Shown here: one piece after another, positions 32,701-39,232 of the stretch | Numbering within the stretch: position 1 is the first letter of the stretch | Layout of the letters: every line of letters begins with the position of its first letter | Assembly (NCBI GenBank): GCA_964057225.1 | Contig: OZ059898.1 | Span: forward strand, 4,216,001-4,280,000 | Source: Auanema rhodensis | Lineage: Eukaryota; Animalia; Nematoda | Direction of reading: 5' to 3' | DNA: 64,000 nucleotides | Notes under the pieces: model-generated | What the model was told of the DNA's origin: nothing | Databases searched by the model: none | The model's input: only the letters and a program-made list of their open reading frames with translations | Translations under genes and position numbers: made by a program

Positions 32701-34784
32701 TCATTGTTCGATTTTGTCAAAGATTATCAACTATAATCAAATAAAAATATTCTGAGGTTGGGTATCCAGATGTGTAGATTCTGAAATTCTTGGTGAGATT
32801 TGGCTGTGACTTTTCAAATTTCAGGAAAAAAGGTTTATATAGACCCTATCCACAAGATTTGTTCACAAAAAAGTTCAGGCTGTAGGCACGTTGTGTCTGG
32901 TGATTGTTCGATTTTGTCAAAGATTATTAACTATAATCAGATAAAAATGTTCACAAGTTGGGTATTCAGATGTGTAGATTCTGAATTTCTTGGTGAGATT
33001 TGGCTGTGACTTTTCAAATTTCAGCAAAAAAGGTTTATATAGACCCTATCCACAAGATTTGTTCACAAAAAAGTTCAGGCTTTAGGCACGTTGTGTCCGG
33101 TGATTGTTCGATTTTGTCAAAGATTATTAACTATAATCAGATAAAAATGTTCACAAGTTGGGTATTCAGATGTGTAGATTCTGAATTTCTTGGTGAGATT
33201 TGGCTGTGACTTTTCAAATTTCAGCAAAAAAGGTTTATATAGACCCTATCCACAAGATTTGTTCACAAAAAAGTTCAGGCTTTAGGCACGTTGTGTCCGG
33301 TGATTGTTCGATTTTGTCAAAGATTATTAACTATAATCAAATAAAAATGTTCACAAGTTAGGTATTCAGATGTGTAGATTCTGAATTTCTTGGTGAGATT
33401 TGGCTGTGACTTTTCAAATTTCAGCAAAAAAGGTTTATATAGACCCTATCCACAAGATTTGTTCACAAAAAAGTTCAGGCTGTAGGCACGTTGTGTCTGG
33501 TGATTGTTCGATTTTGTCAAAGATTATTAACTATAATCAGATAAAAATGTTCACAAGTTGGGTATTCAGATGTGTAGATTCTGAATTTCTTGGTGAGATT
33601 TGGCTGTGACTTTTCAAATTTCAGCAAAAAAGGTTTATATAGACCCTATCCACAAGATTTGTTCACAAAAAAGTTCAGGTTGTAGGCACGTTGTGTCCGG
33701 TGATTGTTCGATTTTGTCAAAGATTATTATTTATAATCAAATAAAAATGTTCACAAGTTAGGTGTTCAGATGTGTAGATTCTGAATTTCTTGGTGAGATT
33801 TGGCTGTGACTTTTCAAATTTCAGCAAAAAAGGTTTATATAGACCCTATCCACAAGATTTGTTCACAAAAAAGTTCAGGTTGTAGGCACGTTGTGTCCGG
33901 TGATTGTTCGATTTTGTCAAAGATTATTATTTATAATCAAATAAAAATGTTCACAAGTTAGGTATTCAGATGTGTAGATTCTGAATTTCTTGGTGAGATT
34001 TGGCTGTGACTTTTCAAATTTCAGCAAAAAAGGTTTATATAGACCCTATCCACAAGATTTGTTCACAAAAAAGTTCAGGCTGTAGGCACGTTGTGTCCGG
34101 TGATTGTTCGATTTTGTCAAAGATTATCAACTATAATCAAATAAAAATGTTCACAAGTTGGGTATTCAGATGTGTAGATTCTGAAATTCTTGGTGAGATT
34201 TGGCTGTGACTTTTCAAATTTCAGGAAAAAAGGTTTATATAGACCCTATCCACAAGATTTGTTCACAAAAAAGTTCAGGTTGTAGGCACGTTGTGTCCGG
34301 TGATTGTTCGATTTTGTCAAAGATTATTATTTATAATCAAATAAAAATGTTCACAAGTTAGGTATTCAGATGTGTAGATTCTGAAATTCTTGGTGAGATT
34401 TGGCTGTGACTTTTCAAATTTCAGCAAAAAAGGTTTATATAGACCCTATCCACAAGATTTGTTCACAAAAAAGTTCAGGCTGTAGGCACGTTGTGTCCGG
34501 TGATTGTTCGATTTTGTCAAAGATTATTAACTATAATCAAATAAAAATATTCTGCGGTTGGGTATCCAGATGTGTAGATTCTGAAATTCTTGGTGAGATT
34601 TGGCTGTGACTTTTCAAATTTCAGGAAAAAAGGTTTATATAGACCCCATCCACAAGATTTGTTCACAAAAAAGTTCAGGTTGTAGGCACGTTGTGTCCGG
34701 TGATTGTTCGATTTTGTCAAAGATTATCAACTATAATCAAATAAAAATATTCTGAGGTTGGGTATCCAGATGTGTAGATTCTGA
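11778..34784. repeat. 200-bp tandem satellite, segment 1 (~115 monomers)
   Basis: Head-to-tail copies of ATTATTAACTATAATCAAATAAAAATATTCTGAGGTTGGGTATTCAGATGTGTAGATTCTGAATTTCTTGGTGAG...GTGTCCGGTGATTGTTCGATTTTGTCAAAG at an exact 200-bp period, also visible in the ORF-track spacing. Confidence 0.99.
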
Positions 34785-34959
34785 TTATATCCCATGTCTT
34801 AAGCTATTTATTTTCCAAATAACATATCTTCTCGGTAATCAATAAAACAAAAATTAACAGAAATCAACAGTATTTCGTAACACATTGTAAAATGAGCGTA
34901 TCATTACCCGTGGTGCTAACCAGTAATGACACGCCCCCTAACTAACACATAAACATCAG
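34785..34959 (+). repeat. DIRS left inverted terminal repeat (175 bp)
   Basis: Exact reverse complement of 39020-39194 on base-by-base reading. Confidence 0.97.
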
Positions 34960-34991
34960 TTTTATTTTCCGACATACGCTGATCGGTCGCT

Positions 34992-35717
34992 ATGCCGTCT
35001 TCACGGGAACCTTCAACTCCCCGTGATTTGGATTCTTCGTCTCATTATTCGCGTTCGCCTTCGCGAGAGCAAGATATTCGACGTTCACGTTCTAGATCCG
35101 TTTCGTCATCTAGATCCTGTTCACTATCTCTCAGGCCTTTCAAGCGCCAGAGGCCTTGTCCTCAACCTAGCTCTGTTCCTCTACCTCCTTCAACTCCAGC
35201 CTCCAAGGAACGACCGGTTATCTCGCTTGCGGAAGATCTTCTTACTAACTTTGAACATCTCGCAGCTGGTATTACTCTCCTTCCTTCGGACCGCTCATCA
35301 CTAATTCAAGAACTCCCTCGCCCGGAATCCATCTTAGCAGATCTCCCGGTGTTGGACTCTAAACTTCAAAATCTTTTGGATGGCTCAACGAGATCATTTC
35401 ATAAAGTATCAGAACAGGAGTTACGAGGACTTTACGAAAACGAGTTACAAGTTCTGAATATCGTTACTATTATCCGTTTTCTCGGATCCAATGATGAAGG
35501 TGGCCCACTTTCTCCGAAAGTTGCTGGTTATCTCTCAATTCTGGAACGCTTTGTCAGTGCAAATCTGCGCACTTTCTTAGGAGCAACTCGAGAGCTTGCC
35601 CTTCTCAGAATGGGATTCTCTCGCCCTTCACAGAGCATGCCGAACTATCGTAAAGTTGGCCTTAGTTCGTCTTCCTCCTTTGATACGGTACTAGGAGTAA
35701 GTCACTCCGCCTTTTAA
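34992..35717 (+). CDS. gag: DIRS gag-like ORF1 (241 aa unspliced; Ser/Arg-rich N-terminus); probably exon 1 of a spliced gag-pol
   Basis: First ORF after the left ITR, starting with ATG. It has an RS-rich low-complexity N-terminus followed by a helical-looking domain. Its stop codon lies inside the predicted intron 35697-35739. Confidence 0.75.
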   Translation: MPSSREPSTPRDLDSSSHYSRSPSREQDIRRSRSRSVSSSRSCSLSLRPFKRQRPCPQPSSVPLPPSTPASKERPVISLAEDLLTNFEHLAAGITLLPSDRSSLIQELPRPESILADLPVLDSKLQNLLDGSTRSFHKVSEQELRGLYENELQVLNIVTIIRFLGSNDEGGPLSPKVAGYLSILERFVSANLRTFLGATRELALLRMGFSRPSQSMPNYRKVGLSSSSSFDTVLGVSHSAF

Positions 35718-35739
35718 CCTTATATTATTTGTTTTACAG
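35697..35739 (+). other. Predicted 43-nt spliceosomal intron joining DIRS ORF1 to the RT ORF in frame
   Basis: GTAAGT donor at a codon boundary of ORF1 (codon 236), AT-rich interior and TTTTACAG acceptor. The next bases GCT CAG GCC GTG are in the frame of ORF 35749-37173, which has no ATG at its start. Confidence 0.75.
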
Positions 35740-37802
35740 GCTCAGGCCGTGGAACTGTTTGGGCGAGCACTGCGAGCCGAACTGAGAAAACCTAACGAGG
35801 TTATGAAACACCGCTCGGAGCAATCTCAACGTCGTGTGGTACCATCGGACCGTAGACACACTGTTAATAGGAAAACTACTTCCCGCTCTGTTGCTCAACG
35901 TACGAAGTTAGTTCCCTCCTTTTCTGCACGTTCATTAGCCAATCATTGTTCATTTTGGTTTTCTATTTCGTCTGATTTGTTCATTTTGCAATCAGTTATT
36001 AATTATCGTTTACCATTTAACGGTTATCTACCTCCTTTGAGTAATTTTGATTCCTCGCTTAATAACTCGGTCTCTTCAAGAAACCTTGACTTATTGATAG
36101 TGGATATGCTGTCAGAAGGCACCATTAGACCTATTCAAAAAAATGAAAAGGTATTCTTATCCCCTGCTTTTGTTGTGCCCAAGAAAGATGGAGAGTTTCG
36201 CTTTATTTTGAATCTGAGACGACTCAATTCATATCTGCAGGACCTTCCCTTCAAGCTAGAATCAATTAAAGATGTATCACTATTGATACAACCATCGGAT
36301 TGGTTAGCTAAAATAGATTTTTCGTCTGCATATCATGCTGTTCCTATTGATCCAGAACATCAACCTTTCCTAGCTTTTCGAGCTGGAGGTTCTGGTTATG
36401 TTTTTCAAGCCATGCCATTTGGCCTTAGTTCAGCTCCATTCACCTTTCATAAGATCGTTAGAGTCCTTGCTTCGTATTTACGAAGTAAAGGAGTTCGCAT
36501 TATTAACTATCTAGACGATTGGCTGTTTATTGGGTCATCTGTCACTCAAGTACAAGAGCATATTCAGTTAGCCTTGTGTTTATTCAAGCAATCTGGTTTC
36601 TCAGTTAACCACACTAAATCCATTTTAATCCCTACTCAAAGAATAGAATTTCTGGGAATCAATCTAAATGCCCAGGAAGGTACATGGTCAATACCAGTAT
36701 CAAAGTTAGATCGCATTCAAAATGCATTAGATCGGGTAAATAAACCAGACGCCACATTAAGATGTTTTGCATCCCTGTTGGGCTTATTGAACTTTACTGC
36801 TATTGTTCATCCCGAAATCAGTTTTTTTGTTCACTCTCTCCAACGTGCGCTAGGTGTGGTATCCTTGAAAGCTCTCTCTTCTTCCTTACACATTAACGAA
36901 AAGTTAAATAGATCGCGAGATTTGGACATAATATTTCCTCAAGTTAAATTTATCTTGGAAACTGTAATGCATCTGCCTGTTTCGTTTGGTCCGTTTTCAC
37001 CTTCGATAACTATAACATCCGACGCTTCCTTGCGAGGATATGGAGGTTGTATGGACGGTCAACAAATTTCCGGAATCTGGTCTATTGAAGAAAAGAAACT
37101 TCATATTAACTGGAGAGAACTGAGCGCTGCTTATAAAGCGGTTTCATCTTCCTCAAATCTAAAAGTTACGTAGACGTGACCTTACTTCTTGATAACATGT
37201 CGGCTATTGCTTATATTAACAAACGAGGAGGCACTCGTTCGGCTGAAGGCTCAGATATAGCCTTAAAGTTATGGGAATTTTGCACTGTCCGTGGTATCAG
37301 AATAAAAGCTTCTCATATTCCGGGACGACAAAATATTTCCGCCGACAAGTTATCGAGAGGACAGTTCTTAGATAGTGAGGAGTGGTCCTTACATGATGAA
37401 ATCATTAAAGAAATATTCCTTGAATGGGGAACACCTAACATTGATCTATTTGCTTCTTCAAATAATTTCAAATTAGATAGATATATTTCATACCTTCCAG
37501 ACCCGGGAGCTTGCTTTATCAACTCCTTTGCCGTAAATTGGGCAGAAGTATCACAAGGATACGCTTACATTTTCCCTCCATTTTCAATGGTGGGGAAAGC
37601 AATAGCAAAGATTGTTCGAGATCGATGCAAAGCAATCTTAATAGCTCCGAACTGGACAAGTCAATATTGGTTCCCTACATTAAAGAAAATTCACAAGGAA
37701 GTACGGGTATTACAACACCCTTACCTCTTACGGGACCCAGTGGGAGAAGTTCACCCACTGTTGAAGAGCCACAACTTCCAGCTCTTAGCATGGAGAATTT
37801 GA
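35740..37802 (+). CDS. pol: DIRS pol: reverse transcriptase, RNase H and Dam-like methyltransferase domain; broken by a 1-bp frameshift near 37150
   Basis: RT motifs: FVVPKKDGEFRFILNLRRLN, IDFSSAYHAVPI, MPFGLSSAP, NYLDDWL, IEFLG. RNase H: TSDAS, HINWRELSA, then (shifted frame) DNMSAIAYINKRGG and HIPGRQNISADKLSR. Methyltransferase-like: IDLFAS, YIFPPF, LIAPNWTSQYWF. Confidence 0.93.
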
Positions 37803-38722
37803 CTGGCCTAATTCCTGATATATCTAATGATACCATGTCTCTATTCTTAAACTCCTGGGCTGCAGGAACTCGTAAGCAATATAATACAGCTCTTAAAAAG
37901 TGGGAAATTTATTGTGCTTCTCACAAAATTTCTATTACTCCCTCTCCTTCAACCGCTGCAGATTTTTTGTCATCTATGTTTAACGACAAAGCCATTTCAA
38001 CAGTTTTGGGCTATAAATCCGCACTTTGTGCTTTAGCTGACTTTCTGAAAATTAGTCCCCCTCTTCGGGATAACCCTTTACTTAGTAGAATATCTAGGGG
38101 AGCGTTCAGATTAAAACCTCCACAACCTAAATATATAGATTCTTGGGAACCTTCCATTGTTCTTTCATATTTAGAAAGTCTGGGGCCCAACAACGAATTA
38201 TCGTTGGAACTACTAACCAAAAAATTAGCAATGCTATTAGCTTTATGCTCCCCAAAACGAGTGTCAGAAATAGCGCAGTTCTCTATAGAGCATGTTCAAT
38301 TCAATGATAACGGTGTTACGTTTTTCATAAATTATAGAAATAAAAATAGAAAAGCGGGAATACCTCATAAAGCTACCTATGAGATTTCTTTAGACAGACC
38401 GTTACTCTGTCCGGTAGCATGTATCAAAGCATATTTAGACAAAACTGAGTCTAAACGGCTTTCAAATAATTTACTGATATCCATCTCACAAGGAACGAGT
38501 ATTACAAGTACAACAGTAGCTCGGTGGATAAGGGATATTTTATCGTTGGCAAAAATACCGCATAGATTTTCTGCGCACTCTACCCGTCACGCTTCTACTT
38601 CGTCAGCTTTTAAAAAAGGGGTTCCATTGAAAACTATAATGAGTGCCGCAAATTGGAAATCCGACACTTCATTTTTCAAACACTACTGCAGAACCAGATC
38701 CTTTCAAGCTGCAATTTTTTGA
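37511..38722 (+). CDS. Tyrosine recombinase (lambda-integrase family) of the DIRS element; true start probably a downstream ATG (e.g. 37790)
   Basis: SWAAGTRKQYNTALKKW, SPKRVSEI (catalytic R), LCPVACIKAY, HSTR (HxxR), ANW and FFKHY (catalytic Y). The ORF overlaps the 3' end of pol in another frame, as is typical of DIRS elements. Confidence 0.95.
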   Translation: MLYQLLCRKLGRSITRIRLHFPSIFNGGESNSKDCSRSMQSNLNSSELDKSILVPYIKENSQGSTGITTPLPLTGPSGRSSPTVEEPQLPALSMENLTGLIPDISNDTMSLFLNSWAAGTRKQYNTALKKWEIYCASHKISITPSPSTAADFLSSMFNDKAISTVLGYKSALCALADFLKISPPLRDNPLLSRISRGAFRLKPPQPKYIDSWEPSIVLSYLESLGPNNELSLELLTKKLAMLLALCSPKRVSEIAQFSIEHVQFNDNGVTFFINYRNKNRKAGIPHKATYEISLDRPLLCPVACIKAYLDKTESKRLSNNLLISISQGTSITSTTVARWIRDILSLAKIPHRFSAHSTRHASTSSAFKKGVPLKTIMSAANWKSDTSFFKHYCRTRSFQAAIF

Positions 38723-38725
38723 AAG

Positions 38726-38801
38726 ATAGCTTAAGACATGGGATATAATTTCTTAAATTTTCCTATTTTATGAAGTAAAATTTTAATTATATCCCATGTC
38801 T
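38726..38801 (+). repeat. DIRS internal complementary region (ICR)
   Basis: 38726-38748 is the reverse complement of the first 23 nt of the element (34785-34807). 38749-38801 is the reverse complement of the last 53 nt (39180-39232). Together they spell the circular junction. Confidence 0.95.
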
Positions 38802-39019
38802 GACTTCCCTCCACCATCCCCTGTGTGTGTTCACCATCCCTCTTTTATATTCAGCTTGAAAAAAATGTTTATGTTATTGCAGTAGATGGTCGTCTTCGAA
38901 CTCAATACCTGTAAAACCTTTTAATAGAAACAACAGTAAAATGAAGAAGTGATTTTATTGTTTCTTTTGTTTTGATGTATTATACCTTGTTACATTGTGA
39001 AGTTTATATTTTTTTGACT

Positions 39020-39232
39020 CTGATGTTTATGTGTTAGTTAGGGGGCGTGTCATTACTGGTTAGCACCACGGGTAATGATACGCTCATTTTACAATGTGTT
39101 ACGAAATACTGTTGATTTCTGTTAATTTTTGTTTTATTGATTACCGAGAAGATATGTTATTTGGAAAATAAATAGCTTAAGACATGGGATATAATTAAAA
39201 TTTTACTTCATAAAATAGGAAAATTTAAGAAA
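39020..39232 (+). repeat. DIRS right ITR (39020-39194) plus 38-bp right extension (39195-39232)
   Basis: Reverse complement of the left ITR, followed by TTAAAATTTTACTTCATAAAATAGGAAAATTTAAGAAA, which is otherwise present only, inverted, in the ICR. Confidence 0.96.

Follow-up and report, generated by a model that had tools for sequence, protein, structure and literature searches.

Splicing of a retrotransposon's own transcript as a means of setting its proteins is known from several long terminal repeat (LTR) elements. In copia and BARE1 (Ty1/copia), the unspliced RNA is the replication template (PMC3735527), and the spliced RNA makes Gag only. In the Ogre elements of legumes (Tat lineage, Ty3/gypsy), an intron lies between the open reading frame (ORF) for Gag and protease (GAG-PROT) and that for reverse transcriptase, RNase H and integrase (RT-RH-INT); it is kept in genomic copies, and its splicing allows the full polyprotein to be made (PMC6317226). 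In the DIRS elements described so far, gag, tyrosine recombinase (YR) and pol occupy separate or overlapping ORFs, and introns or splicing are unmentioned in surveys of these elements (PMC3266345, PMC3783388). The RT of Dictyostelium DIRS-1 can act in trans (PMC7192593), and a nematode survey describes DIRS1-like elements as rare in Chromadoria (PMC4157794). The present analysis concerns a DIRS1-like retrotransposon of the nematode Auanema rhodensis, the representative of what is called here family A. It lies in a stretch of 64,000 nucleotides (nt) of contig OZ059898.1 (positions 4,216,001 to 4,280,000, referred to as the window), and the feature of interest is a 43-nt segment that separates its gag-like ORF1 from the frame encoding RT, RNase H and a Dam-like methyltransferase (RT-RH-MT).

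This segment, at 35697-35739, is likely to be a U2-type GT-AG intron in the size class most frequent in the host, a mini-intron placed within a gag-pol gene, and on the evidence of the reading frames its splicing probably joins Gag to RT-RH-MT in family A. The arrangement is of the Ogre type, with an intron that carries a stop and changes the frame between structural and enzyme ORFs and that is retained in genomic copies. Both the principle and the polarity are therefore already known, and plant Ogre is the nearest analogue. The differences are that Ogre is a plant LTR element with an integrase, a spacer averaging 274 bp and experimentally demonstrated splicing, whereas family A is an animal tyrosine-recombinase element with a candidate intron of 43 nt, the modal size in its host, and the intron is in frame in some of its sister families and lost from another. 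An earlier sequence-only reading, which had proposed that this element uses a host-style intron as a switch between Gag and Gag-Pol, contrasted it with copia. That contrast is correct, because the spliced RNA of family A would make Gag-Pol, but it is incomplete, since Ogre has the polarity proposed here (PMC6317226). The difference from the DIRS elements described so far is that gag and RT-RH-MT form one gene with a candidate mini-intron, followed by the YR. Penelope-like elements, as reportedly described by Arkhipova et al. in 2003, also keep spliceosomal introns in genomic copies; they differ in RT class and in integration mechanism, and their introns are not placed as a gate between gag and pol.

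The first line of evidence is the layout of the junction. ORF1 (34992-35717) ends in a TAA, and the RT frame, which in the window copy is open from 35701 to 37170, is a different frame that starts without an initiating ATG, the first one being found at 35803. The two frames are open together over 14 nt only (35701-35714). Both ends of the segment are in phase 0, as position 35696 closes codon 235 of ORF1 and position 35740 opens a codon of the RT frame, so that removal of the 43 nt joins the two frames as DTVLG/AQAVELFG. The G+C content of the segment is 33%, against 49-53% in the 150-nt flanks. Every point that the sequence-only reading made about the junction, including the GTAAGT...TTTTACAG ends and the stop within the segment, holds in the sequence. 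It had also pointed to an alternative donor at 35688, which is indeed in frame (52 nt) but weak (3.4 bits, against 6.6 bits for 35697, on the scale introduced below), and its GT is lost in the oldest family-A copy. The break in the RT frame near 37150 occurs in the window copy alone, and a DNA run displays a one-base length difference near 37144; in each of the other seven copies 687 codons are open after the segment, which upholds the single protein of about 922 residues that had been predicted for Gag-RT-RH-MT (235 + 687 codons).

The same layout bears on the possibility that Pol is translated separately, from ATG 35803 by re-initiation after the ORF1 stop or from GTG 35749. Classical DIRS1-like elements do have separate gag, YR and pol ORFs (PMC3266345), and the ATG lies just 86 nt past the ORF1 stop. 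A motif of the form ELFG+xLR+EL is, however, conserved in families A, B, C and D, and in family A it is found immediately after the acceptor, in the RT frame and upstream of the first ATG. Since this motif (ELFG...LRAEL) precedes any ATG of the RT frame, the stretch must be translated by continuation from ORF1. Moreover, re-initiation after an ORF of 241 codons is inefficient in eukaryotes, and relatives, both within this clade and from other species, have gag and RT in a single ORF (886-1033 codons). Separate translation of Pol is accordingly very improbable.

The second line of evidence comes from comparison with the introns of the host. A sample of 21 introns was taken from actin and HSP70 genes elsewhere in the genome, placed by model coordinates and reading frame, and a splice-site matrix was built from it, with the host introns themselves scored by leave-one-out. 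Most of them (17 of 21) measure 40-47 nt, their G+C content is 19-42%, and their donors are of the GTAAG/GTATG type and their acceptors of the TTTCAG/TTTTAG type. The splice signals of family A are host-like on this scale: the pair scores 21.3 bits (host introns 7-25 bits, median about 16) and no other GT..AG pair of 38-50 nt on the sense strand of the 4.4-kb element scores as high. The acceptor at 35739 (14.7 bits) is the top of 237 sense-strand AG sites, the runner-up having 9.1 bits, and the donor at 35697 (6.6 bits) ranks third among 216 GT sites. In a 4.4-kb locus of the related family B, the homologous donor and the homologous acceptor are each the highest-scoring of their kind, and in family B' this is true of the donor. 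The resemblance in size and acceptor, claimed at first from introns within the window, thus extends to actin and HSP70 introns outside it.

Several of the host mini-introns have, 15-25 nt upstream of the 3' splice site, a CTAAT- or ACTTAT-like motif that resembles a branch point. The segment of family A contains TTTTAAC about as far from its 3' end, and that of B' contains CCTAAT. With the host matrix, a 50-nt GT..AG pair on the minus strand, at about 37675-37724 of the window, scores 21.6 bits, as high as the sense candidate. This antisense pair is probably due to chance, and could matter if the element were transcribed antisense. A group of five near-identical HSP70 gene copies, about 3.2 kb apart, occupies G000:C5:15312060-15330644, the first of them on the strand opposite to the other four.

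The third line of evidence is provided by related DIRS families of the same genome, retrieved by a six-frame search with the RT frame, in which they are about 43% identical to family A. Families B, C and their relatives have gag and RT-RH-MT in a single uninterrupted ORF of 897-1033 codons, and exon 1 of family A shares 36-49% identity with the gag portion of such ORFs in B, C and D. The alignment at the junction is unambiguous, with the motifs MPxY/FK... and ...ELFG+xLR+EL on either side, and the site is homologous in all of these families. In contrast to the segment of family A, which breaks the frame and contains a stop, those of B (45 nt, GTAGGA...TTCTCAG), B' (45 nt, GTAAAT...TTTTCTCAG) and D (48 nt, GTATAC...TTTTCAG) are in frame and stop-free, family D being a gag-only deletion derivative closest to A. 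Family C has no segment: exactly these nucleotides are absent from its continuous 958-codon ORF, which reads ...VDNAPE/DSAPELFG, and the exon ends of A, when the exons are compared separately, abut as they do in C. The G+C content of all four segments is 27-40%, against 41-54% in their flanks.

A maximum-likelihood tree of the RT, rooted with outgroups from other species, gives (A,(C,(B',B))) with 100/100 support, and the gag identities group D with A. From the tree and the position of D it follows that the segment was present in the common ancestor of these families and that its absence from C is one derived loss. Such a precise loss from GT to AG would look like a copy made from spliced RNA. 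As B, B' and D have a segment that neither breaks the frame nor contains a stop, and C has none, these families encode Gag-RT-RH-MT as one ORF, spliced or not. As judged from these comparisons, the stop-containing, frame-shifting state is a derived feature of family A and a switch is not a property of the clade. The proposal of the sequence-only reading therefore divides: the intron itself is well supported by the families, the host statistics and the genomic copies, whereas a family-wide switch between Gag and Gag-Pol is disfavoured by B, B', C and D.

Other features of these families were also observed. A supposed intron-less copy of family B (C1:17.20 Mb) was rejected, as it is degenerate and has an 81-nt deletion that overlaps the segment only in part. 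Family D has copies in G000:C3:5318500-5324500 and at C3:5327934, 5.2 kb apart; after the 48-nt segment it runs into the 3' end of the recombinase ORF, and its in-frame donor is weak (1.4 bits), with a strong inner GTAAGT 10 nt downstream. Additionally, at least 10 matches to a 59-residue gag fragment of the B/C type are spaced about 1.5-1.8 kb apart in G000:C3:4967946-4996450, where a DIRS piece seems to have become part of a tandem array.

The comparison between families also bears on a +1 programmed ribosomal frameshift, in which the segment would stay unspliced and the ribosome, at the slow stop codon of GCC TTT TAA C, would slip +1 on the Phe codon. The 14-nt overlap of the frames holds TTT TAA C, the P-site codon would re-pair perfectly after the +1 shift, and the oldest family-A copy retains TTT followed by a stop. 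Read-through into the RT frame would add 14 residues where family B has 15, an insert length resembling the in-frame segments of 15-16 codons in B and D. A frameshift leaves unaccounted for, however, the GT...AG ends, the top-ranking acceptor, the low G+C content, the host-modal length and the exact absence of the segment from C. The slip site is furthermore confined to family A, because B, B' and D have neither a change of frame nor a related site and C lacks the segment altogether. To our knowledge, +1 recoding of this type has not been described for nematode retroelements, and we regard it as unlikely here.

The fourth line of evidence consists of the genomic copies of family A itself, which were searched exon by exon in the assembly (181 Mb, 112 contigs). 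Eight copies were found, of which seven are 99.4-100% identical and one, the oldest, about 97-98%. In all eight, exons 1 and 2 are separated by exactly 43 nt, and this search of the assembly found no intron-less copy. The segment is identical in seven copies; the oldest has four changes in the 43 nt, against about 2% overall, yet still starts with GTAAGT, ends in CAG, measures 43 nt and contains a stop, so that GT and AG are preserved in eight of eight. A single contig of the DNA run crosses 35165-38801 with the 43 nt in place, and only the intron-containing form is seen there.

These copies are relevant to a further alternative, according to which gag-pol is simply broken. The segment would be either a linker that was once coding or an intron no longer functional, in which two bases were lost and a stop arose, and family A would make no Pol and would have spread by means of another element's enzymes or by segmental duplication. 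In its favour, the counterpart of the segment in B, B' and D keeps the frame and has no stop, the window copy has a second, private frame break, and C1 and C4 carry two pairs of copies whose members are no more than about 20-40 kb apart. Nevertheless, ORF1 and the 687-codon frame are both open in seven copies on four contigs that are 99.4-100% identical, which implies that family A spread while in the stop-containing state, and the flanks of the copies differ, so that most of them are insertions rather than duplications. There is also no plausible helper, given that the nearest other family is about 43% identical in the RT and about 40% in gag and that no segment-less family-A copy exists in the assembly. 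From the recent spread and the lack of a helper in the assembly it follows that some bypass of the frame break must work. A broken gag-pol is as improbable, in our estimation, as the ribosomal frameshift.

Several observations nonetheless weigh against the segment being a spliced mini-intron. The donor score of 6.6 bits is middling by host standards. The presence of the intron in every copy requires an extra assumption if splicing is efficient, namely a nuclear or unspliced template, or else weak splicing. The sequence-only reading had anticipated that related elements would keep GT and AG around a freely drifting interior; B, B' and D do share the site and its GT/AG, but the interiors of B and B' are 73% identical, against 73-77% in the flanks, and have thus drifted no faster. 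Within this interior, a CHKRP stretch is kept through two synonymous changes. The joint chance that the lengths in B and D would be in frame and stop-free is about 0.02, which hints that in these families retention of the segment is tolerated or that it may be translated at least sometimes. Outside this genome, the gag and linker of relatives are too diverged to align, with the exception of one protein of Oesophagostomum dentatum (P0107), which has no intron at the homologous site. A search of a protein collection with the 687-residue frame returned nothing above 37% identity and no transcript-derived fusion protein. Finally, three of the four RNA-like runs listed for the organism, examined as contigs rather than raw reads, have nothing on 34960-39019, a result that gives no verdict on splicing either way.

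With regard to the relatives in other species, the O. dentatum gene model (L045:3001-5414, GCA_000797555.1) has three short predicted introns of about 45, 50 and 53 nt in its gag and linker region, none of them at the homologous site; two bridge changes of frame, and one ends in a clean TTTTCAG. It may be that DIRS-like elements of nematodes contain mini-introns more often than this single genome indicates; alternatively, the predicted introns may be frameshifts patched by the gene finder. The contigs of the relatives P0001, P0002 and P0008 carry truncated or continuous ORFs.

If the segment is taken as a mini-intron, the history and working of the junction could be as follows. The intron would already have been at this codon boundary in the common ancestor of the related DIRS families of the genome; family C would have undergone a clean loss, as expected if spliced RNA was once reverse-transcribed, and in family A the intron would have gained a stop and a length that is not a multiple of three. 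Unspliced family-A RNA would then give the Gag-like protein of 241 residues only, and spliced RNA the Gag-RT-RH-MT fusion of 922 codons, which relatives encode as one ORF. Since the intron is present in every genomic copy, the template of reverse transcription would be unspliced RNA, and as this RNA cannot encode Pol, Pol would act in trans. We tentatively put forward the complete picture, namely that an ancestral gag/pol mini-intron passed through several family splits, that in family A it may have become an obligatory splice gate, with the unspliced RNA as both genome and Gag messenger and the spliced RNA as the source of a Gag-Pol acting in trans, and that the loss in C may be a fossil of a reverse-transcribed spliced RNA. 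Present-day splicing, the translation of both RNA forms and the relevance of their ratio are what we infer from the arrangement, and a switch would follow mechanically only if both RNA forms reach ribosomes.

The element that carries the segment is DIRS1-like, as RT, tyrosine recombinase, inverted terminal repeats (ITRs) and an internal complementary region are all found, in the order gag, pol, YR; the features are listed in Table 1. It shares with Dictyostelium DIRS-1 and animal DIRS1-like elements the ITRs, the internal complementary region with a right extension, the RT, the Dam-like MT, the tyrosine recombinase and the lack of a target duplication. The element measures 4.45 kb (34784-39232) and sits inside a very homogeneous satellite (96-97% matches) with a 200-bp monomer, which extends over about 42 kb of the window (12000-54000). 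It begins with ATT directly after the satellite, at 34784, upstream of which the copies diverge. The phase of the satellite monomers runs on across the insertion, which means that any target duplication is limited to 1-3 ambiguous bases. Another family-A copy (C4:7.89 Mb) also lies in a satellite, about 81% similar to that of the window. The ITRs (176-182 nt) are 99% complementary to each other; in the internal complementary region, the left end has its partner at 38726-38749, and the right end together with the right extension has its partner at 38749-38801.

Among the encoded domains, RVT_1 (PF00078) was detected with an E-value of 7e-22 in the window copy (about 36175-36666) and of 2e-22 in another copy. 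The Dam-like MT domain (PF05869, E 1e-6, about 37377-37712) reaches 28.8 bits in the window piece, against a cut-off of 28.1, and 25.9 bits, slightly below that cut-off, in the full frame of another copy. For RNase H there was no Pfam match at E 0.1, although a stretch of the DAS...HIN..EL type is visible at 37020-37130 and PF17917 is present in relatives. The Pfam search gave no match for the gag-like ORF1, and no protease or integrase family was matched by the ORFs of the element. The start of the recombinase ORF and the end of the RT-RH-MT frame, which are in different frames, have about 290 nt in common (37511-37802); no strong host-type acceptor precedes the recombinase ORF (the best in the region being below 9 bits).

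Table 1. Features of the family-A element, with positions numbered from the first nucleotide of the window
Feature	Position	Strand	Remarks
Left inverted terminal repeat	34784..34959	+	I1, 182 nt, 99% complementary to 39020-39201
Gag-like ORF1, coding part (exon 1)	34992..35696	+	235 codons, ends ...DTVLG, phase 0
Candidate spliceosomal mini-intron	35697..35739	+	43 nt, GTAAGT...TTTTACAG, 33% G+C, holds the ORF1 stop, +1 frame shift
GCC TTT TAA C, possible +1 slip site	35709..35718	+	Sequence compatibility only, from the frame map
ORF1 stop TAA	35715..35717	+	Read only when the segment is retained; product of 241 residues, tail VSHSAF
Exon 2, RT-RH-MT frame	35740..37802	+	Begins AQAVELFGRALRAEL; one break in the window copy near 37144-37175
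Tyrosine recombinase ORF	37511..38722	+	PF00589 Phage_integrase, E 1.6e-13, residues 236-394
Internal complementary region	38726..38801	+	Inverted repeats I3 and I2, both 100% complementary
Right inverted terminal repeat and right extension	39020..39232	+	Repeat to about 39195, extension to 39232; satellite resumes at 39232

The significance of the junction lies in the fact that retroelements normally purge introns, since they are copied by way of RNA. When an intron persists at a single site through several family splits, this points to an unspliced, possibly nuclear, RNA as the template, and it bears on the question of trans-acting enzymes. The expression of DIRS proteins is poorly understood, and the two surveys of the group cited above report no intron. 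For annotation, the consequence is that gene finders and transposable-element pipelines that expect continuous ORFs will class such copies as defective. If the reading proposed here is true, family A would be the first tyrosine-recombinase retroelement, and the first animal retrotransposon, whose polyprotein expression depends on splicing. Within one genome, a single site would then present an intron that is in frame (B, B' and D), frame-breaking (A) or cleanly lost (C), and would constitute a natural experiment on the origin of the control of the ratio between Gag and Gag-Pol.

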